This document shows positions 45 through 16,161 of a stretch of 64,000 nt of DNA, piece by piece (position 1 is the stretch's first letter; each line of letters begins with the position of its first letter). The notes under the pieces are model-generated. The model was not told the DNA's origin. It was given only the letters and a program-made list of their open reading frames with translations, and did no database searches. Where the stretch lies: sequence record OR496884.1; one strand, 5' to 3'. A program made the translations under genes and the position numbers.

Positions 45-1817
45 TTATTCATCAAGACCTAAACGACTTGAAACTTCTGCAACTACAGTTACTTGGAGTG
101 TTTTTGTTCCAGAGTTATTTAAATTAACATTAATCGAAACTTTATCGGAAACAGCATTACTCGGAGTGATACTATTAAAATCAATTCCGTAGGTTCCGTA
201 TTTCCCACTAAAATCTAATGCAACAGTGTTTCCAACAACACGATACATCCCAGTTACTTTAAAACAAGATGTATTGTTACTGTTAGGGTCCCTAATCATT
301 ATCCAAAGTGAAACACCTCTGAATGATTGTGTTCCAGCATCGGGGATTGCGAGAGAAATGACGCCATTATCGCCAGCCGCGATCGAGCCACTATATTTGC
401 TGGAATAAACATATTTACCTGGAAGATCCAAATAGTTAGGATCGACTCTCAGCAAATTACCTAAATGTCGACTATCACTTGCGCCATTAAGTGTTGTATT
501 ATCGTTTCCGTATTCAATGACTTTACCACCTGAACCAGAAATAACAATTTGACGATTAACCCTGGACTGGTTATTTCTAAATAAATGATTAGCGGTTGCA
601 TGACGGACTGCCGCGATTGCACTACCGGATTCACCGTTAAGACTAACATTTTGGACTACAACACGTTCAGCGGTTTCATCCATGAAAATATCATGAGCGC
701 CAGCACCCCCACCTGTTAATGTAATTCCGTTAATATTAATACTTTTGTGTTTAGACCCTATTGCCAGTTCACCAAATTTGGTAATGGAAATACGATCAGC
801 AACACCACCGGAAATATTGATGTTATCTGTATCATTATGTTCGGCAGTAATTAAAATACGATCTTTAACAACACAGTCAGAAACAGATACGTTTGCGGTA
901 TCATCAATCCAAAGTTGTTTACCAAACGCACAAGCATCTACAGCTGCATAAGAAACTTTGTTGTTTTCAATTTCAAGTGAACCGTAGCTGTTGTTTTCAT
1001 CGTAACAACCTTGAACAATAATGAATCCATTACCATTGATAAAGTTGTAACTGGTTGCGTTCTGACCGTTATGAGTGGTACACCCAATACACTTAGCGTT
1101 TGTAATGCCGGTGTGTTGGAAGTGTCCCGCATTTTTACCGACAGGTGCAATTGATGTACACCCTAATAACAATGTATTTTTAACAACACGATTAGTCGGA
1201 TCGTCATCAGTTGAATAATAACCTTTCCCCCTAAAATCGGTTGAGTAAAAGAACCCTTCAAAACGATTATACAGAATCTTAATATCTTCGTAATCTGCAA
1301 CATCCTCATATGCAATCACTTGGAAAGCACGAGAAGAGCTAGAAAAGTTTTTAGATGTTTGTGTCCCAAGTAACATAGAAGTGAATTTAGATGTTTTAAG
1401 TCTAAATCCGTTATGCGTTAATGCAGCGTCTCCCGTTAATATAATTGGTTTAGAAATAGTTACTTTATCAAAAGTAAACGGTCCACCAATTAAACTTAAC
1501 GTCCCGCCACTAGGTGTCTCATCAATTGCTTGTTGAAGAAGTGCTGTAACATCTGATCCGTCAGTTGCAGGACGGTAATCATTAAACGATCTATAATCTC
1601 TTAAAACAAATCGACCATCATGTTCCCTAAGAACATCACTTAATAAGTTTTGTTTTAATTCTACTATTAATTTAGAGAGCGCATCAAACGTAGGTCTCTC
1701 CACACCGAATCGATCAATCCAACTTGTTAGAGTTGAATTTAACGCTTTATCTAAGTTCCCTGCGTTGAAGAACAAGTCTGTCATCGCAGTAGAACCAATA
1801 GGATTGTTGCTACCCAT
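45..1817 (-). CDS. Tailspike / polysaccharide depolymerase 1 (beta-helix, pectate-lyase-like)
   Basis: Start moved to ATG 1817 (GAGG RBS). N-terminal anchor MGSNNPIGSTAMTDLFFNAGNLDKAL...WIDRFGVER; then DxTxxLQxAID motif and N/D/G-rich beta-helix repeats. Confidence 0.8.
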   Translation of the reverse strand: MGSNNPIGSTAMTDLFFNAGNLDKALNSTLTSWIDRFGVERPTFDALSKLIVELKQNLLSDVLREHDGRFVLRDYRSFNDYRPATDGSDVTALLQQAIDETPSGGTLSLIGGPFTFDKVTISKPIILTGDAALTHNGFRLKTSKFTSMLLGTQTSKNFSSSSRAFQVIAYEDVADYEDIKILYNRFEGFFYSTDFRGKGYYSTDDDPTNRVVKNTLLLGCTSIAPVGKNAGHFQHTGITNAKCIGCTTHNGQNATSYNFINGNGFIIVQGCYDENNSYGSLEIENNKVSYAAVDACAFGKQLWIDDTANVSVSDCVVKDRILITAEHNDTDNINISGGVADRISITKFGELAIGSKHKSININGITLTGGGAGAHDIFMDETAERVVVQNVSLNGESGSAIAAVRHATANHLFRNNQSRVNRQIVISGSGGKVIEYGNDNTTLNGASDSRHLGNLLRVDPNYLDLPGKYVYSSKYSGSIAAGDNGVISLAIPDAGTQSFRGVSLWIMIRDPNSNNTSCFKVTGMYRVVGNTVALDFSGKYGTYGIDFNSITPSNAVSDKVSINVNLNNSGTKTLQVTVVAEVSSRLGLDE

Positions 1818-1924: not shown

Positions 1925-3688
1925 TTAACTAGGTTTTGTTTTACCAACAAATCGTCCCAATGTAGTTATTTCAAAAATGGCATTAACTTGATCAAATTCA
2001 GTGACAGTATTTTCCGCCCATAAATTCAAAACCAAATTGTTCCCTGATTTTATACATTCGTACCTTACTACAATTCTGGTTCCGGTTTGATTATTAAATC
2101 CTTCGACAATTGTTCCTAAAGTTCCAGAATTAGAACTTATATCAAATTGAATATGTGCATTTTTGATAAAGGACCCGGCTGTATCCACACCAGAAATTTT
2201 TATGTTAATGTGTGCATAACAATAAACATATGTAGTAGCAAAATTATGTATTTCCAAACAAGGAACTTTTGTCATCCCAAGTAGATCAAGTTTCTTACCA
2301 AAAATAACTTTTTCGCCACCTAAATTTGTATCGACGTCTAATAAAACTGGATAGCGTGAAACCTTAGAAATTAACTCCTCAGAACTAATTCTCTTGGTAT
2401 ACAAAATACTCTTACCATCAACAGAATACAGTTGAAGTTTCTTTCTGGAAAAGTTTTCAACCTGTGTTAATTCCCAATCTTCAGTTCCGGTATGTGTATG
2501 ACCTTTGACGTCGAAATAGAATGCCTTTGGACCCATGTCAATTAAGTATAAAGGTCCAGGTGTTTCAGCTGTTTTACCAAGGTTTGTTTTAATATTTTCA
2601 AATGTCCAGTTAGTACATTGACCTTGATAACCTGCTATTACTTTATTGGATATAGACTTTCCGCCAAAGAACTTTGGTGTTCCTGTAAATGAGACATTCC
2701 CCTTTGTGTGAGTAGAACTATCGATTACAGCAATACCGGGTTGTTCAAAATACGGATTATGGAAATTTAAATCAAATATTCGGGCGCCAATAGAAACTGA
2801 ATTAGGAGAAGCAAATTCGCAATCAGTAAAACGGATACCTTGCATCCCTAAAGAAAGCGGTAAAGTGGGTTCAACAAATTCGATATCCCATTCCGTGGCA
2901 TGTGAGAACCGGCAACTAGTCCAAATGTTTAAATTACTGAAATCGGTAATTCTTAAATTGATTCTGTTTTTTCTGTACCAAACAGATTTAGTATGGCACC
3001 AGTAACAGCCGGTGACGTCAGTAGTCCCGATGCCATCTTGTTGAGCTATATCAAAGCCTTCAATAATCAATTCTTCTAAATTATCCCACCACGCTTCTCC
3101 GCGATGAAGTCCGATGCCTTTATTATTCGCACCAAGCAATGTTAGCTTTTTAATGCTTGTGTGATACTGACCAGTATTATTTCCGATTATTGCGTCATTT
3201 CTTGATTTTAATAAAACCTTTTCGTACATTATTGCAGGTGTTGCTAAATCGGTATTTTCCCAATATAGTTCGGTTGCATATTGTCCAACACCTTCAATGT
3301 GTACACCAGCCCTTCTTTTTATTGTTGTCGAAAAACGATAACGCTCTCCCTCAAGAATAATTGAAGACCCATAAGGTAATGAAGAAATAACAGCGTTAAT
3401 AACAGGACCGTAATCTAAAACAGCTGCAAAATAAGGAATAAACTTTTTAACATCTAAAACTCGTTTTACAGTAACATCACCGTGTCCTATTTTATCTGAT
3501 CCTAAGGGACCTGAAATATTATTGATTAAATCAGTAACATTTCTTTCCATGTAAGAGTACGTAATACGCTGAACACCAAATCTATCTGTCCAAATATTTG
3601 CATCAGAATGCATTGCCTTATCTAAATTGGCAGCGTTTAGGAATAACTCATTCATTCCATTACTGCCAATAGGCGGAATACTACTCAT
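1925..3688 (-). CDS. Tailspike / polysaccharide depolymerase 2
   Basis: Same anchor (PPIGSNGMNELFLNAANLDKAM...WTDRFGVQR); beta-helix start ERYRFSTTI...VHIEGVG...TELY. Confidence 0.78.
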   Translation of the reverse strand: MSSIPPIGSNGMNELFLNAANLDKAMHSDANIWTDRFGVQRITYSYMERNVTDLINNISGPLGSDKIGHGDVTVKRVLDVKKFIPYFAAVLDYGPVINAVISSLPYGSSIILEGERYRFSTTIKRRAGVHIEGVGQYATELYWENTDLATPAIMYEKVLLKSRNDAIIGNNTGQYHTSIKKLTLLGANNKGIGLHRGEAWWDNLEELIIEGFDIAQQDGIGTTDVTGCYWCHTKSVWYRKNRINLRITDFSNLNIWTSCRFSHATEWDIEFVEPTLPLSLGMQGIRFTDCEFASPNSVSIGARIFDLNFHNPYFEQPGIAVIDSSTHTKGNVSFTGTPKFFGGKSISNKVIAGYQGQCTNWTFENIKTNLGKTAETPGPLYLIDMGPKAFYFDVKGHTHTGTEDWELTQVENFSRKKLQLYSVDGKSILYTKRISSEELISKVSRYPVLLDVDTNLGGEKVIFGKKLDLLGMTKVPCLEIHNFATTYVYCYAHINIKISGVDTAGSFIKNAHIQFDISSNSGTLGTIVEGFNNQTGTRIVVRYECIKSGNNLVLNLWAENTVTEFDQVNAIFEITTLGRFVGKTKPS

Positions 3689-3779
3689 AGATTAAACTCC
3701 TATTAACTGTTTTACTCAGACGGTATTACAAACGATCCACTTGACATTATGATAGTTCCAGTTTAAATAAAAAAAAAAT

Positions 3780-3819
3780 AAAAGTATTCTACTTCCCAGT
3801 TGGGAAGTAGAATACTTTT
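3780..3819. terminator. 19-bp perfect hairpin with long T tract on - strand
   Basis: aaaagtattctacttccca-gt-tgggaagtagaatactttt; A-run at ~3769-3778. Confidence 0.8.
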
Positions 3820-3833
3820 TACATAGACCGTTA

Positions 3834-4466
3834 TTAATTATAACTACAAATCCTACTTAACAAATCAATATGATTTAAATAAGCAGCTTGATTCATGTGA
3901 CATTTATAACTTGTTACTTCATTATACATCAACACCCTACTATCAAAACCCCTTACTTCATTTTTAGATCCAAAAGGATTATCATCAATCAATAAAATTC
4001 TTGAACTAGGATACATTTTTTCTAAATAGCCCAATTTATCTTTATTGATTTCATGATCAATAGAATGTATCATATCAAACTTATTTTCCAACCCATGTTT
4101 CTTTAGATAATTATAAGTACTCATCCAAGCCTCTATATTGTCGCCTCTATGAGTACAAATAACAATCTTTATACTGTTCCCAAAATGAACTCTAGCTCCA
4201 TCCAATACTCCAACTAAATTTCTTAATAACTCACTTGGTTGCGCTTCATTCATATACTCTCGTTTTTCTATTACTTCTTTTAAAACAATTTGTTTCAAAT
4301 CCCCGGTATAATCACTAAAATGAACAAATGGATTCTCTGTTAACCACACTGACTCTTCTAGCAAAAAGTTATTAAGACAATAGTGTAAAGTTCTTTTATA
4401 AACTTCATTGTGAGTATTACACAATGTATCATCCATATCAAATGCCAAAATCATATCGTGATGCAT
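3834..4466 (-). CDS. HAD-superfamily phosphatase, 5'(3')-nucleotidase-like
   Basis: Motif I AFDMDDTL, motif II ICTHRG, motif IV LIDDNP. Confidence 0.75.
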   Translation of the reverse strand: MHHDMILAFDMDDTLCNTHNEVYKRTLHYCLNNFLLEESVWLTENPFVHFSDYTGDLKQIVLKEVIEKREYMNEAQPSELLRNLVGVLDGARVHFGNSIKIVICTHRGDNIEAWMSTYNYLKKHGLENKFDMIHSIDHEINKDKLGYLEKMYPSSRILLIDDNPFGSKNEVRGFDSRVLMYNEVTSYKCHMNQAAYLNHIDLLSRICSYN

Positions 4467-4497
4467 AGTAACTACTAAAAATAATTACAAGTATTAA

Positions 4498-4517
4498 TTA
4501 CGCAGTGATAATGTCTA
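4498..4517 (-). promoter_or_regulatory. Candidate phage early-type promoter
   Basis: - strand TAGACATTATCACTGCGTAA, 16/20 identical to the element at 16589-16608; 41 nt upstream of the HAD gene. Confidence 0.5.
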
Positions 4518-4577
4518 CTTGATCCAAAATGGATATTAAATATTTTGGATTTAACTGTATAAACTAAGGAATTAGTA

Positions 4578-5522
4578 ATGAACGTTAATATTGATAACCT
4601 TGAACACGTATTTCAAACATTGAATGGATTTGAATCGTTAAGTTCTGGTGATACAACTTCTCCAGATTCTATTTATGCAAAAACAGTTTTAAAGTTAAAT
4701 GGGGTAGATTTTAAAGGCAGAGAAGGTTCTGAAAGTTTTATATCTTCTTTAAAAGCCGGTGCTAAAAAAGTTTATGAAATGATTAAAAACTTTATTAAGG
4801 CTGTTAGAGATTTCTTTTTTGGCAGTAAGGGGCCCAAACAAACTAAAACTATTAATGACGCCATTAAAAACACGCAAAATAATAGTAAAGAAATAATCAG
4901 TAAAAAGAATAATAACAGTTTCGATGAAACAGAGATAAGTGCACTTAGTGCCTATAAAACAGAAAAAGAACGTATCCAAAAATTAATGAATAATGAAAAA
5001 ATTAAACTTGAAACTTACAACAGCACGACATTTTTACTAAAATTTAGCGATAGCATTTGGACTGCTGGGATTGCCGGTACAAGGTTGAGTGAGATCCCTG
5101 GAATTTCGATATCTGACTTAAAATCTACGGCTGCACGCCTAGAAGATATAAACACAGCAATTGGATTTATATCCGAGAAGCAATCAGCTAAACATAACTT
5201 TTACACTAATCAAGAGCGTGTAAGTATTTTTGATACCATTCCGCCACTTGTTGAATTGCAAAAATTGTTTAATGAGATGAGGACTGTCGCTTCTAATGCT
5301 CTAGCGACGGTTACTAAAGATCTTGAACATAACAATGAACTAGCAAATAAACAAGAAAATAGTGATAGTGTTGAATTAAAATATGCCGCTGAAAAGGTTA
5401 GGAGATTGTGTAACAAGATGGTGACTGCGTCTAATAAATTAACTGAATTGATTAAACATTGCGATAATAAAATTATTAAAATTAATCAAGTTATGGAAGC
5501 AGTGAAAGAGCTAACTTCTTAA
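4578..5522 (+). CDS. Probable internal head (ejection) protein, phiKZ-like family
   Basis: N-terminal G-x-E motifs (NGFESL, GREGSESF) followed by amphipathic FISSLKAGAKKVYEMIKNFIKAVRDFF and a helical body; pattern resembles cleaved giant-phage head proteins. Confidence 0.55.
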   Translation: MNVNIDNLEHVFQTLNGFESLSSGDTTSPDSIYAKTVLKLNGVDFKGREGSESFISSLKAGAKKVYEMIKNFIKAVRDFFFGSKGPKQTKTINDAIKNTQNNSKEIISKKNNNSFDETEISALSAYKTEKERIQKLMNNEKIKLETYNSTTFLLKFSDSIWTAGIAGTRLSEIPGISISDLKSTAARLEDINTAIGFISEKQSAKHNFYTNQERVSIFDTIPPLVELQKLFNEMRTVASNALATVTKDLEHNNELANKQENSDSVELKYAAEKVRRLCNKMVTASNKLTELIKHCDNKIIKINQVMEAVKELTS

Positions 5523-5534
5523 CGACAGTCGCGT

Positions 5535-5602
5535 TGGGAAATATTTTTAATATTTCCCAGATACAAAAATCCCTACCTACCCAATGGGTAGGTAGGGATT
5601 TT
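5535..5602. terminator. Tandem hairpins at a convergent junction
   Basis: tgggaaatatt-ttt-aatatttccca (5535-5559) and aaaatccctacctaccca-a-tgggtaggtagggatttt (5566-5602). Confidence 0.75.
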
Positions 5603-5606
5603 ATCG

Positions 5607-5696
5607 TTAGTGGAAGTAATACTTTTGTTGTACATTTCCGGCTTTAAAGAAAAGATCTGGTATTGTTGTTGACCCAATAGGGTTAGTACTACTCAT
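5607..5696 (-). pseudogene. Truncated fifth tailspike gene (anchor only, 29 aa)
   Basis: Hand translation MSSTNPIGSTTIPDLFFKAGNVQQKYYFH*; AGGAG RBS intact; matches tailspike 1 NPIGST..DLFF.AGN; below ORF-track cutoff. Confidence 0.85.
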
Positions 5697-5709
5697 TTAG
5701 GTCTCCTAA

Positions 5710-5735
5710 TAAATGGGGTAAAATCCCCCCATTTA
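5710..5735. terminator. Hairpin after tailspike 3
   Basis: taaatgggg...ccccattta (9-bp stem). Confidence 0.55.
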
Positions 5736-5738
5736 AAA

Positions 5739-7676
5739 TTATAGTTTTTTACCTTTTATCCATCTTACTGCCGATGCCGAACTTACAGAAATTATTTTTA
5801 ACGTAAATTCATCTATTACATCGACTCTAACAACGCCGCCATCTATATGAGGAAATGTAATATAATCACCTACTCTAAAACCGGTTGCTCTTGAATAAGG
5901 ATAACCCTCGTGCGACATGAATTGTCCATTTCCTACTGTACCGATACCTACAATAATGGAATCAAACTCAAAAACAGAACAAGGTAAAGTAATCAAGGTA
6001 TTAGGAGTAAAATCACCTTGGTTAGTCAGATTCTGTATCCCATTGATAGTGTACCCTGTTTCGGTTAGAATTGTTGAAAGGTATTTTCTGTTTGGTGGGA
6101 CGGTGGGACCAAACCTATTAAAGTCCATCCTGACGTTATCGCCTTTAGAAAGACAACGTATAGCAGCAAAGGTCAAACCAATTTCGTTGATAAAATTATC
6201 ACCAATATAAACATTTGGTTTTGCATCTACACCCGCTTCTAAACGGATGACATCACGGTCACCGTCAATCCCGCAATTATAGAATTTATTTTTGGTTAAT
6301 TCAAGATAATCAGCATCTGGACCAATTAACAACGCGGTTTTATTAACATTTCTAAAAATGTTATTTTCAGTATATACTCGACTTGCTTTACTAATATACA
6401 TTCCACCAGAAAGAAAAAGACCTTCATCTGGGTTAGATATCATGCTATCTATCATGTTATTAAATAGAATAATGTCTTCAGATGGATACGCATTGGGAAC
6501 ATAATTATTTACTACAATTGAATTTCCGCCATTCAAATTGGAGACTTTCGCCCCGCTGCCGTCGTAATCATACAAAATTTTGTTAATCCCGGCTACAAGA
6601 TCTTTACAGGAATCAATCACTAACCCTCGTTGAAATGCCCCTCTGGTACGATTGTTTAAGACAATAGAATCATGTAAATTTGTACACTTTATTGGATAAA
6701 TCGTTCTATTAATTTCAAGATTAATGAAATTAATTTTTGTATGTGGTTTGAGACGATCTGGATTAGCCGCGTGCGAACCAACGCCTCCATGGCACATGTC
6801 AAATCGACTATTGGTTATTAAAATATTATTGCAAGGTGTTCCGTCCCAGGGCGGTCCTGCAGGAGCCCCAGCTTGTGATGAATAATCTATCTGTATTGCT
6901 TCATACCCATAAACGGTTGATAGGTCTAGATGGAAATTTCCAAAAAATCCGCAATTATCAACAAGAACATTTTCGCAAGAATTAAATTCAAAAATATGAG
7001 TTTCACGGCCATTATAAAAGTCTATACCAAAAACATAAATATTTTTAGAGTGTACAGGCGTAAAAAACCCTCGGTAACCCGTCGAAATCTTATCACCACC
7101 TAAGAAAATTTTTGCACGTCCATTAAAACATACAAAATTTATTCTATTTCCTAAATCGTATTCCCCAATTATATTCGTGGTTCCGCCGTCAAAAGCAACG
7201 GCCATGCCACCGACATTACAATCAAGTTCAGTACCGGTTTCTAACACCCAGGATGTTGAGTAAGGAATAAATAATCTCCCGGAAATTTTATATTTCCCAT
7301 ATGGGAAATATATTGATCTCCAAACACCTGCAGCCAAAATAGCTTTTTGTATTCCATCAGTAGAATCAGTTTCACCTGTTGGATCTACACCTGGAAATTG
7401 TAATACAGATACTTTTTCTTTAAACATTAATTCTATCGGTACTACTTTTGAACCTTCGCCTTCTTGTTGGAAACCTAAAAGTTCACTTCCCAGTTTAGTT
7501 GAAAAATCATTTTTTAAATTTAAAACTTCTCTTTCAACCAAATGGTACGTTTTTCTTTGTGTACCGAATCGATCCATCCAAAAATCTTCATTACTATGCA
7601 GCGCACGATCCAAATTTCCGGCGTTTGTTAGTAAATCAGACATTGTGCTAGACCCTATTGGGTTTTGACTACTCAT
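5739..7676 (-). CDS. Tailspike / polysaccharide depolymerase 3 (pectate_lyase_3-like)
   Basis: Anchor MSSQNPIGSSTMSDLLTNAGNLDRAL...WMDRFGTQR; GVDPTGETDSTDGIQKAI...IYFPYGKYKIS; EAIQID...DGTPCNNI...GVGSH. Confidence 0.82.
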   Translation of the reverse strand: MSSQNPIGSSTMSDLLTNAGNLDRALHSNEDFWMDRFGTQRKTYHLVEREVLNLKNDFSTKLGSELLGFQQEGEGSKVVPIELMFKEKVSVLQFPGVDPTGETDSTDGIQKAILAAGVWRSIYFPYGKYKISGRLFIPYSTSWVLETGTELDCNVGGMAVAFDGGTTNIIGEYDLGNRINFVCFNGRAKIFLGGDKISTGYRGFFTPVHSKNIYVFGIDFYNGRETHIFEFNSCENVLVDNCGFFGNFHLDLSTVYGYEAIQIDYSSQAGAPAGPPWDGTPCNNILITNSRFDMCHGGVGSHAANPDRLKPHTKINFINLEINRTIYPIKCTNLHDSIVLNNRTRGAFQRGLVIDSCKDLVAGINKILYDYDGSGAKVSNLNGGNSIVVNNYVPNAYPSEDIILFNNMIDSMISNPDEGLFLSGGMYISKASRVYTENNIFRNVNKTALLIGPDADYLELTKNKFYNCGIDGDRDVIRLEAGVDAKPNVYIGDNFINEIGLTFAAIRCLSKGDNVRMDFNRFGPTVPPNRKYLSTILTETGYTINGIQNLTNQGDFTPNTLITLPCSVFEFDSIIVGIGTVGNGQFMSHEGYPYSRATGFRVGDYITFPHIDGGVVRVDVIDEFTLKIISVSSASAVRWIKGKKL

Positions 7677-7692
7677 ATGTCATCCTCTTAAA

Positions 7693-7722
7693 GTTAGTAT
7701 CCCTTACATAAGGGATACTAAC
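7693..7722. terminator. 14-bp hairpin between tailspikes 4 and 3
   Basis: gttagtatccctta-ca-taagggatactaac. Confidence 0.7.
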
Positions 7723-7728
7723 ATTTTG

Positions 7729-9594
7729 TTATATTAGTGCTTTAATACTAATATTAGTATTTGAAAAACTGGTTATGATTTCACATCCAGCATTCCCGGT
7801 TACATATTGTACCCGATAAACCTTTCCTGCTAAAAGTTTAATCGCTATATATGGAATAGGTAGCGTGTTAATTCCTGAAAATACTCTGGTATCAAAGAAA
7901 GTTTGTAAAACAAAATTATCAGTTTCATTGAATAATCGAATCGCCACTCTGGTCCCATCGGCTGGGACATTGACTGTAAATATTCCGCTAAATGAATATA
8001 TACAATCTTCTATGGGGACTATTCCTACATCTACCCATTCCCCGTTTAAATTTTTACCAACTTGTGTAAAGGGGATGTTGACAAAATTTCCAGTTGCGGT
8101 AGGGGTGAAATTTGCTGAAAATCCAAGTTGGATATCTGAGATAGGTGTATTTCCTTGATTAGGAACTGCAGACTTTAATTCAACAGCTGAAAGTATTCTC
8201 CCGCCCGCATTGGAAAGTATGTGGGGTTTTGATCCAAACTCACACATAGAGTCTATTTCAATACGCATTTCGGTATTTCTGGAAATAGACATTGCATAAG
8301 TAAGTGCGTCAGATATATTCTTGTTACCTTTAAATCTGAGTAACTTACAAACGGATCCAGCTATATTGTAACTTGTAGTATAAGAATTTCCCATGTTACT
8401 ATGGGATGCGGGATCTAATGTGTTATAGAAGAAATCCACATTACATCTTTGGGGGTTATTTACCGATCCATATTTTTCAACAACAAATCTTCCAGCTGTG
8501 TTACCAATGAATGTGATGTCTTTCATTTCAAACGTGGAATACTGACTTCCTGTTGAAACTCTTAATACTCGAGCAAAACAAGAAGATACCTTGACACCGC
8601 TAGAAGAAGAAATCCAAATATCATGTTCAAAATTGCAATTGATAATCCGGCCATTACAATTTTCGGAATCTTCTATCTGTGCACCCGCCTCAACGTTTGT
8701 CAACGTCTGGGCTAATCCCGTTTCTGAACAACCATCTATCAAGATTGTTTTACATCTGGCGGCACCAAAAACACTAGTATTTCTTCCACCGGTAACATCA
8801 GAATGCAGGTATTTTACATCGTCAACACTAAAACATAAAAAATGCCCGCCGTTGACTTCATTGGATGCAGTTGATTTACAAGAATCAATAATAACTCTTT
8901 TAGTGGGGTAACCCGTTAATGCGGTTATTGAGGTTCCTGCCCGCACTGCGTAAAAGCCGCCTTTAAATTCTGTACCAAGACACTTTACTTCATCAATACC
9001 ATCTATGTCATTAGGTTCTGCTCGAATTAAAACACCTCTTGTTGTTGATTCTAAGGTCAAACCAAATACATGAGTAATTTTACCTCTAGCGTGAACGTGA
9101 GGAAGACCGGTCACGACACCAGCAAAAACAATTTTAGTTGTTTTTGGGCCGTGGATTATCGTATTTTGTAAATTTAAAATAGTACCGTTAACTAAATAGT
9201 AGTTAGCTGGATTTTTTGGTTCTGGAAAATAAATAGGTCTTCCGGTAGCAAGGGCTAACTTTAAAACAGTACTAATATCAGTTTGATTGGCACGAGCGTT
9301 ATAAGGCGCGTCTGTTATATCTATGGCATTTGCCAATTTAAATCCAACTGTTGCAGGTAGATGTTCTAAATCGCTACTAAATCCAATTTTTCCAGCACCA
9401 GCACCTTGTGCATATGAAAATTCAAAATCATTAACTTTACGTTCCATGCGAGAATAAGTAATGCGCTCTACCCCGAATCTATCGGTGAACGTATCTTCTT
9501 CACTATTCATTGCAAAATCTAAATTTGTTGCATTTAAATAGGCGTCACGGAAGTCTGGACTTCCTATGGGATTACCCGTGCTACTCATGTCCAT
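7729..9594 (-). CDS. Tailspike / depolymerase 4 with C1q-like C-terminal domain
   Basis: Anchor TGNPIGSPDFRDAYLNATNLDFAMNS...FTDRFGVER; beta-helix; C-terminus FSANF...IPFTQVGKNLNG...IYSFSG...KLLAGKVYRVQ resembles the C1q/TNF fold. Confidence 0.8.
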   Translation of the reverse strand: MDMSSTGNPIGSPDFRDAYLNATNLDFAMNSEEDTFTDRFGVERITYSRMERKVNDFEFSYAQGAGAGKIGFSSDLEHLPATVGFKLANAIDITDAPYNARANQTDISTVLKLALATGRPIYFPEPKNPANYYLVNGTILNLQNTIIHGPKTTKIVFAGVVTGLPHVHARGKITHVFGLTLESTTRGVLIRAEPNDIDGIDEVKCLGTEFKGGFYAVRAGTSITALTGYPTKRVIIDSCKSTASNEVNGGHFLCFSVDDVKYLHSDVTGGRNTSVFGAARCKTILIDGCSETGLAQTLTNVEAGAQIEDSENCNGRIINCNFEHDIWISSSSGVKVSSCFARVLRVSTGSQYSTFEMKDITFIGNTAGRFVVEKYGSVNNPQRCNVDFFYNTLDPASHSNMGNSYTTSYNIAGSVCKLLRFKGNKNISDALTYAMSISRNTEMRIEIDSMCEFGSKPHILSNAGGRILSAVELKSAVPNQGNTPISDIQLGFSANFTPTATGNFVNIPFTQVGKNLNGEWVDVGIVPIEDCIYSFSGIFTVNVPADGTRVAIRLFNETDNFVLQTFFDTRVFSGINTLPIPYIAIKLLAGKVYRVQYVTGNAGCEIITSFSNTNISIKALI

Positions 9595-15743: not shown

Positions 15744-15848
15744 TTATTTGCTAAAGTACATCGGAATAATGCTTCCCACTAATCCCCAGAAAAGCACTAT
15801 AATAACAATGGCTAACAAACCCCGTTTTTTATTCTTTAACCCTACCAC
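15744..15848 (-). CDS. 34-aa single-pass membrane peptide (not in ORF track)
   Basis: GGAG-7nt-GTG; MVGLKNKKRGLLAIVIIVLFWGLVGSIIPMYFSK*; overlaps the end of the upstream gene by 20 nt. Confidence 0.55.
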   Translation of the reverse strand: MVGLKNKKRGLLAIVIIVLFWGLVGSIIPMYFSK

Positions 15849-16161
15849 TTTTGTACTCCATGTGAAGCGGAGGTGAGAAGTCATAAATACAAAATGTTTC
15901 TATGACTCTTTCCCCAGTTTTAGGATCAGTTACCCTGGAAGTCCAACCGTGTTCGTCTCGACAGTCCATTAAAAAGTTAGGGTAAACAATGACTTCTTGT
16001 TTACCAATTTCAACTAACCGTTTAGTGAGGTCTGATTGTTCTTTTGCAATGATAACCACATCAGCAATTATCCCTGGCAAAAGCAAAACAAACACGACTA
16101 GCAATATCCAGGCTAACTCGGATTTGACTCGTTGTGTGATATTATATTTATCTTCCATCAA
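15829..16161 (-). CDS. Membrane-anchored hypothetical protein
   Basis: N-terminal TM LAWILLVVFVLLLPGIIADVVIIA; two Cys in the soluble part. Confidence 0.6.
   Translation of the reverse strand: MMEDKYNITQRVKSELAWILLVVFVLLLPGIIADVVIIAKEQSDLTKRLVEIGKQEVIVYPNFLMDCRDEHGWTSRVTDPKTGERVIETFCIYDFSPPLHMEYKSGRVKE

Follow-up and report, generated by a model that had tools for sequence, protein, structure and literature searches.

The probable recombination scar of a displaced third tailspike gene in the spike array of Aeromonas phage AerS_266

Introduction

Module swapping reportedly shapes multi-tailspike arrays with conserved N-terminal anchors, as in TSP1-4 of phage CBA120 (Ackermannviridae), and T4-like phages shuffle cassettes at promoter/stem-loop repeats. 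The spike array described here resembles these systems in its conserved heads and exchangeable bodies, and in the small promoter-to-terminator cassettes found between structural genes. It differs from them in that its joint is illegitimate, in frame, and placed within the anchor coding sequence, and in that a translatable chimeric stump was left behind.

For the mounting of such anchors, the closest described case is the Shigella siphophage Sf11, in which the trimer of tailspike gp13 docks through its residues 4-59 onto a distal tail protein helix (PMC12724387). An anchor profile of the array matches residues 6-58 of gp13 (PDB 9OCC) with an E-value of 5.6e-14; the likeness lies in the N-terminal adaptor-binding helices. 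Unlike gp13, the stump holds only the first third of the domain, and Sf11 is a siphophage with one spike type.

The window analyzed here (the whole stretch of DNA under study, 64,000 nucleotides) corresponds to bases 1-64000 of the 243,674-bp genome of Aeromonas phage AerS_266 (OR496884), a phiKZ-like jumbo phage of Chaoshanvirus whose host is A. salmonicida. The paper on this phage describes four spikes and their common N-termini, and mentions no remnant (PMC10673249). The ORF of 29 codons with which we are concerned has no annotation in the GenBank record OR496884. It had been put forward, from the letters of the window alone, as the remnant of a fifth tailspike lost possibly by recombination at a palindrome.

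Results

The spike array and its 29-codon ORF

On the minus strand, the genes follow each other in the order tailspike A, tailspike B, the 29-codon ORF (hereafter, the stump), a two-way terminator, p314 (on the opposite strand), a HAD gene, tailspike C (TSP C), and tailspike D. A convergent adhesin gene comes next after the array, across the ends of the record, and a separate fifth anchor-bearing spike lies far from the array, at 152927-155374 of AerS_266. Our main references for comparison are phage ZPAH34 (OM810292) and L040, a 16.4-kb metagenome contig that we recovered via its tailspike B protein (98% identical). The features of the window are the following:

7729-9588, minus strand: tailspike A
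5739-7676, minus strand: tailspike B, 97% base identity to L040 from ATG to stop
5697-5738, minus strand: spacer between tailspike B and the stump, with a weak hairpin; orthologous to the L040 spacer (37/42)
5703-5707, minus strand: RBS of the stump, AGGAG; its context, TTAGGAGACC, is the same as in the intact third tailspike of L040 and ZPAH34
5607-5696, minus strand: stump, whole ORF, 29 codons
5634-5696, minus strand: stump codons 1-21, from the head of the third tailspike gene once resident here, with matches in the third tailspike of L040 and in TSP3 of ZPAH34
5607-5633, minus strand: codons 22-29 of the stump and stop, homologous to the 3' end of a 182-aa gene
5563-5600, both strands: strong two-way terminator hairpin, -29.6 kcal/mol on either strand
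4578-5522, plus strand: p314, a 314-aa gene of unknown function, with Ferozepurvirus-type homologues at 64-70% identity
3834-4466, minus strand: HAD-family phosphatase-like gene, with homologues 53-65% identical
3780-3819, minus strand: terminator hairpin 3' of the HAD gene, the one compared with the tail of the stump in the original prediction
1925-3688, minus strand: TSP C, the present third tailspike
45-1817, minus strand: tailspike D

The start of tailspike A in the record, 9588, agrees with the MSS start of the remaining spikes; an in-frame ATG upstream of it (MDMSS..., window 9588-9594) is present in ZPAH34 too.

The ORF at 5607-5696 (minus) translates to MSSTNPIGSTTIPDLFFKAGNVQQKYYFH followed by a stop codon. 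Its coordinates, its peptide, its AGGAG, and its anchor start are exactly as first given; the AGGAG lies six bases ahead of the ATG, and the ORF does stand behind the hairpin of the spacer that follows the tailspike at 5739-7676. The stump is flanked by a weak hairpin ahead of it, at -15.5 kcal/mol, and by a strong one behind it, at -29.6 kcal/mol. We built an anchor profile from the four full tailspike N-termini, leaving the stump out, and scored with it the 2339 stop-to-stop frames of the window: the stump reached 31.9 bits (E 1.4e-8), and the runner-up frame 4.8 bits. Right behind its start codon, the stump carries the N-P-I-G-S ... D-L ... N-A-x-N motif, with the single exception of a K at the invariant N18. 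The homology to the tailspike anchor ends after codon 21, so that the stump does not attain the complete domain (~55-60 residues, including L-D, the W-x-D-R-F-G-x-x-R hairpin, and the second helix). The remnant reading of the original prediction is thus upheld, in that the stump truly is what remains of the 5' end of a tailspike gene, which breaks off behind codon 21. It is a real pseudogene fragment, unannotated until now, and annotation should flag it. As for its closest paralogue in the window, the tailspike at 45-1817 had been named, which holds for residues (15/21), but by bases the tailspike at 5739-7676 is closer (44/63).

The head belongs to the third array tailspike

Each position in the array has its own type of head, and these types correspond one-to-one with those of ZPAH34: tailspike A to the first, B to the second, D to the fourth (28/28 residues), and the stump to the third. 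The head of the stump shares 51 of 63 bases and 18 of 21 residues with the third tailspike of L040, and 48 of 63 bases and again 18 of 21 residues with TSP3 of ZPAH34. In L040, where the upstream tailspike is the 97% identical tailspike B, the slot holds an intact 738-aa tailspike with a Peptidase_S74 end (5718-7934), followed by the fourth spike and the adhesin gene; this tailspike is 98% identical to the third spike of ZPAH34, UOX39547. The full gene that had been suggested as something to look for at this slot in relatives therefore exists, and the breakpoint could be mapped: similarity between AerS_266 and L040 breaks off inside the gene, at base 5631-5634. When public sequencing runs were compared with 3700-7700 of the window, we obtained freshwater-metagenome contigs with a 97% match over 5634-7676, which stops exactly at the end of codon 21 of the stump.

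The third array tailspikes of ZPAH34 and L040 thus resemble the stump in their slot after the second array tailspike, in the context of the RBS, and in the head residues, and in L040 the spacer ahead is orthologous as well. They differ from it in being full genes with a pectate-lyase-like body and the Peptidase_S74 end, whereas the stump ends after codon 21 of the shared part. The body of the 738-aa tailspike has no match in the whole AerS_266 genome. ZPAH34 and L040 have four array members each, and AerS_266 also still has four. That the remnant is of a "fifth" tailspike, as it had been called, is then not supported, its head being orthologous to the third array member of both relatives. On these comparisons, the gene of this slot appears to have been displaced or replaced, and we found no sign of a former fifth array member.

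Origin of the foreign tail

We aligned the 3' flank of p314 with that of its homologues in pAEv1810, PS1, and PS2. The codons at the end of the stump align there with the final seven, counting the stop, of a 182-aa gene (PS1_0084 / pAEv1810_102 type), which in Ferozepurvirus phages is placed tail to tail with the p314 homologue. The stump ends in Q-K-Y-Y-F-H-stop and the 182-aa gene in Q-E-Y-C-F-R-stop; 17 of 21 bases are the same as in pAEv1810, and both frame and stop are shared. Across the 860,000 positions of all fetched loci, the tail 21-mer had only two hits with at most four mismatches, and both are the end of the 182-aa gene beside a p314 homologue (in pAEv1810 and in locus L042). The tail-to-tail order of the two genes is the rule in that group, as two more contigs confirm. 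A related hairpin follows the end of the 182-aa gene as it follows the stump, and the terminator at 5563-5600 has the CCTACCTAcCC stem type that is found after p314 homologues in Ferozepurvirus. The sequence past the break has, in the end of the 182-aa gene, an identifiable and different origin, and as judged from the alignment, the stop codon of the stump is that gene's own. The homologue of the 182-aa gene that AerS_266 itself carries (88552-89097) was considered as the source and rejected, as the end of that gene and its hairpin differ. Because this copy ends differently, the alignment places the tail with the Ferozepurvirus-type p314 cassette.

The locus of AerS_266 around that copy has its own peculiarities: 87854-89097 (L049 3855-5098) contains an HNH homing endonuclease gene where Ferozepurvirus has the pair of 314-aa and 182-aa genes, and it lacks the p314-family paralogue that ZPAH34 and CF8 kept ~1-2.5 kb downstream.

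At the joint, the parental sequences are AAT TTA GAT (tailspike) and AAT TTA CAA (182-aa gene of pAEv1810), and the product reads AAT GTA CAA; the crossover probably took place at the AAT-TA microhomology. The joint lies 33 bases from the stem of the terminator. Spelled out, the original prediction would explain the same structure by an extra, fifth tailspike deleted between palindromic terminator hairpins, the tail being a leftover arm of a hairpin like the one at 3780-3819. The resemblance on which this was based exists, since 5611-5626 can be aligned to the hairpin arm 3801-3819 with 17 matched positions and a 2-base gap, and in a post hoc comparison restricted to the spacers of the array, it has a p of about 0.012. 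Against the whole window, however, it is no better than chance (observed best 25, mean of the shuffled-tail null 25.6), and the 3' end of the 182-aa gene, the best of 860,000 positions, explains the tail better, its position and frame included. Besides, relatives have four array members, and the head of the stump is an orthologue of their third. We consequently discarded the hairpin arm as the origin of the tail, superseded by the end of the 182-aa gene, and we regard recombination at a palindrome as very improbable.

It is barely credible that the joint is instead a mis-join in the published genome. It is true that the reads we found are metagenome contigs of relatives only, none of AerS_266. 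Nevertheless, p314 and the HAD gene occur once in the genome (no other family member exceeds 29% identity to p314), so there is no repeat to cause a mis-join and no other place for the segment; moreover, the joint is in frame, and the orthologues of both sides end exactly there.

The inserted cassettes and the present third tailspike

About 2 kb (3626-5633) separate the stump from codon 22 of TSP C. They contain the p314 cassette, a self-contained HAD cassette, and a new RBS with a diverged 21-codon head. The p314 gene belongs to a paralogous family that is called virion structural in some jumbo phages, and the ~50 bases upstream of it (about 4529-4577) are conserved with the Ferozepurvirus-type homologues. 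A promoter-like motif, conserved in five phages, is found upstream of the HAD gene (about 4467-4541). The homologues of the latter occupy various positions: that of ZPAH34 follows the separate fifth spike, that of locus L046 neighbours the small-subunit gene of ribonucleotide reductase, and those of L044, L045, and L048 are found elsewhere. Given the order in ZPAH34, we considered the stump and the HAD gene as the two ends of a moved unit of "fifth spike plus HAD"; this was rejected, the head of the stump being of the third-array type and not of the fifth-spike type.

In its details, the motif consists of TTTAAyATmCAT with ATTATC ~20 bases on, and it precedes every HAD homologue (window ~4467-4541; L034 4700-4823; L044, L046, and L048 ~7880-8000). 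A similar one stands upstream of the gene that is divergent from the p314 homologue in Ferozepurvirus. The motif upstream of the HAD gene may be both a phage promoter class and a cassette-joining site.

We compared TSP C with the third tailspike of L040. Codons 1-21 (3626-3688) show 63% base identity and codons 22-61 (3506-3625) 82.5%, and the body is unrelated. The corresponding value is 81% for the stump and about 78% for the common backbone (adhesin, ribonucleotide reductase). Because the head of TSP C is this much lower than codons 22-61 and the stump (Fisher p 0.006), the stump and TSP C from codon 22 onward resemble a single orthologous head and neck that the insertion has split. For the similarity of TSP C to L040, however, the best single break falls at base 117, not 63 (permutation p 0.009), so that the right-hand joint is not fixed.

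A donor with the order 182-aa gene, 314-aa gene, HAD, and tailspike was absent from the contexts of the closest p314 and HAD homologues, which have only other arrangements. To find a donor or a second carrier, we queried IMG/VR with the 314-aa protein, viral contigs with degenerate patterns for the heads of TSP C and the stump, and metagenome contigs with patterns covering the joint or the TSP C head; nothing useful came of these searches.

A further trace of p314 was observed in ZPAH34. UOX39552, a 76-aa "hypothetical protein" beside DUF1353 (L004 6270-6500), holds the decayed C-terminal 55 residues of the p314 subtype, 65% identical to the product of window 4578-5522 and with the common motif TELIKHCDNKIIKI; L040 is cleanly without the 187 bases of this piece. 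Because a p314 piece of the same subtype stands there, the p314 cassette may have moved within the lineage, with no need of import.

Divergence of the stump and exchange of tailspike B

The stump differs from its L040 orthologue by nine synonymous and three replacement changes (pS 0.64, pN 0.06, binomial 1.5e-4), and from that of ZPAH34 by 12 and three. This synonymous excess indicates that most of the divergence of the stump accumulated while it was part of a gene under selection, although a peptide that is selected to this day would agree with it as well. Among the three replacements with respect to L040, N18K is unique to the stump, at an N that is invariant in 16 full anchors. It is a weak sign of relaxed constraint, the 63 bases being too few for more.

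A different picture emerges for tailspike B. The cassette (window 5739-7676, L040 3738-5675) is 97% identical, with a pS of 0.073, and the high identity begins exactly at the ATG and fades near the stop; the backbones of AerS_266 and L040 are 75-78% identical, and the L040 backbone is nearer to that of ZPAH34 (91-96%). The discrepancy between tailspike B and the backbone indicates that tailspike B was exchanged recently as a cassette, and the stump appears native to the AerS_266 backbone. The possibility that the stump arrived with the recent tailspike B cassette was rejected on the pS values, 0.64 against 0.073, both with respect to L040. The first nine bases are nearly the same in all array genes, and such exchanges may be guided by them. 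The collections searched contained no phage close to AerS_266, with a backbone identity above 90%.

The stump peptide

With only a weak hairpin ahead of it, the stump may be transcribed, and with its start signals intact, it may then be translated; no RNA sequencing run was found to contain this stretch. Using sequences from the window and the contigs, we modeled residues 1-70 of tailspike B (mean pLDDT 80.5), which form a coil (1-11), a helix (12-27), a hairpin (32-42), and a second helix (44-66). Compared with this model, the stump keeps the coil and 10 of the 16 helix 1 residues, less than 40% of the anchor fold, and its remaining eight residues are foreign. Neither helix 2 nor the beta hairpin that contains the invariant D-R-F is left. 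In light of the model, a folded, trimeric competitor made from the stump is unlikely. The same holds for the suggestion that the peptide might compete for anchor sites, given that 21 of ~55-60 anchor residues are left, one of them a K at an invariant N.

Could the stump nonetheless be a functional micropeptide, a 29-aa product made late that acts on spike assembly (e.g., by occupying the docking site of the third spike) or elsewhere? The RBS and the ATG are the same as those of the intact L040 gene, its differences from the orthologues are mostly synonymous, and the strong terminator behind it makes a defined short message end plausible. However, the stump retains 21 of ~55-60 anchor residues, the N replaced by K is invariant in all 16 full anchors, and the last eight residues come from the end of an unrelated gene, while the synonymous excess is explained by the past of the sequence within a full gene. 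Furthermore, the joint turned up in no second genome or metagenome contig: searches of the phage collection, the sequencing-run index, and the JGI metagenomes gave no other carrier of the 29-codon chimeric ORF, and the relatives have the full gene, so that the idea of an ORF kept in relatives found no support in the collections searched. We judge a functional micropeptide to be quite improbable, and infer that the stump has no function. Its more specific version, in which the 29-residue peptide is made late, binds the baseplate site of the old third spike head or nascent heads, and tunes the spikes mounted, strikes us as highly improbable. If true, the peptide would be a natural dominant-negative fragment, retained after a spike swap.

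Discussion

We conclude that the stump is very probably a recombination scar, in which the head of the original third tailspike was joined in frame to the end of an unrelated gene, with no function of its own. We suggest the following history. The ancestor of AerS_266 would have had a third tailspike of the ZPAH34/L040 type (738 aa, with the Peptidase_S74 chaperone end) right behind tailspike B. An illegitimate crossover within codons 21-22, probably at AAT-TA, would have joined this gene to the 3' end of the 182-aa gene. The frames would have agreed by chance, leaving 21 tailspike codons and eight foreign codons, with a foreign stop and the two-way terminator, and the joint would represent the left edge of the approximately 2 kb (3626-5633) of inserted cassettes. 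From here, two endings can be envisaged. In the first, which we slightly prefer, the old gene would survive from about codon 22 within TSP C, its head only having been replaced. In the second, the whole old gene would have been replaced, by a single crossover with a differently arranged phage. In both, the catalytic body of the 738-aa gene is gone. The microhomology mechanism and the order of events are what we infer.

Read as a recombination scar, the stump is a base-level record of the rebuilding of a jumbo phage's row of host-recognition spikes: an in-frame crossover within the anchor sequence would have let two promoter-to-terminator cassettes land in the middle of the array, displacing the head of the resident spike. 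This is ordinary mosaic evolution, mapped to the base, and not a new kind of element. A comparable leftover of a tailspike swap exists in the same genus. After its fourth tailspike, ZPAH34 carries an 84-aa ORF, UOX39545 (L004 15820-16098; ORF region 15844-16098), which shares 85.7% identity with the C-terminal 84 residues of AerS_266 tailspike D. Unlike the stump, it is the tail end of the replaced gene and not its head, and there is no fusion to the end of a foreign gene. Because of this 3' remnant, of a tailspike B cassette that is 97% identical across backbones differing by >20%, and of the differing positions of the HAD and 314-aa cassettes, the comparisons together show a locus that turns over quickly. 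Such turnover of the spike locus matters when host ranges are to be predicted for Aeromonas phages that are under consideration for use in aquaculture.

Two other loci contain ORFs of potential relevance to spike arrays. In PS1 (MN032614, ~163557-163985; L027 1456-1884), a 142-aa ORF has a degenerate anchor-like N-terminus, with N-E-L-E-S for N-P-I-G-S and T-R-L-G for D-R-F-G. Full spike genes stand on both sides of this ORF, which is followed by a 133-aa ORF and is possibly another shortened spike or an adaptor. In L040 (1702-3658), the first array spike has just 420 aa and is followed by ORFs of 66 aa and 166 aa without homologues among the fetched loci; this may be a rebuilt slot.
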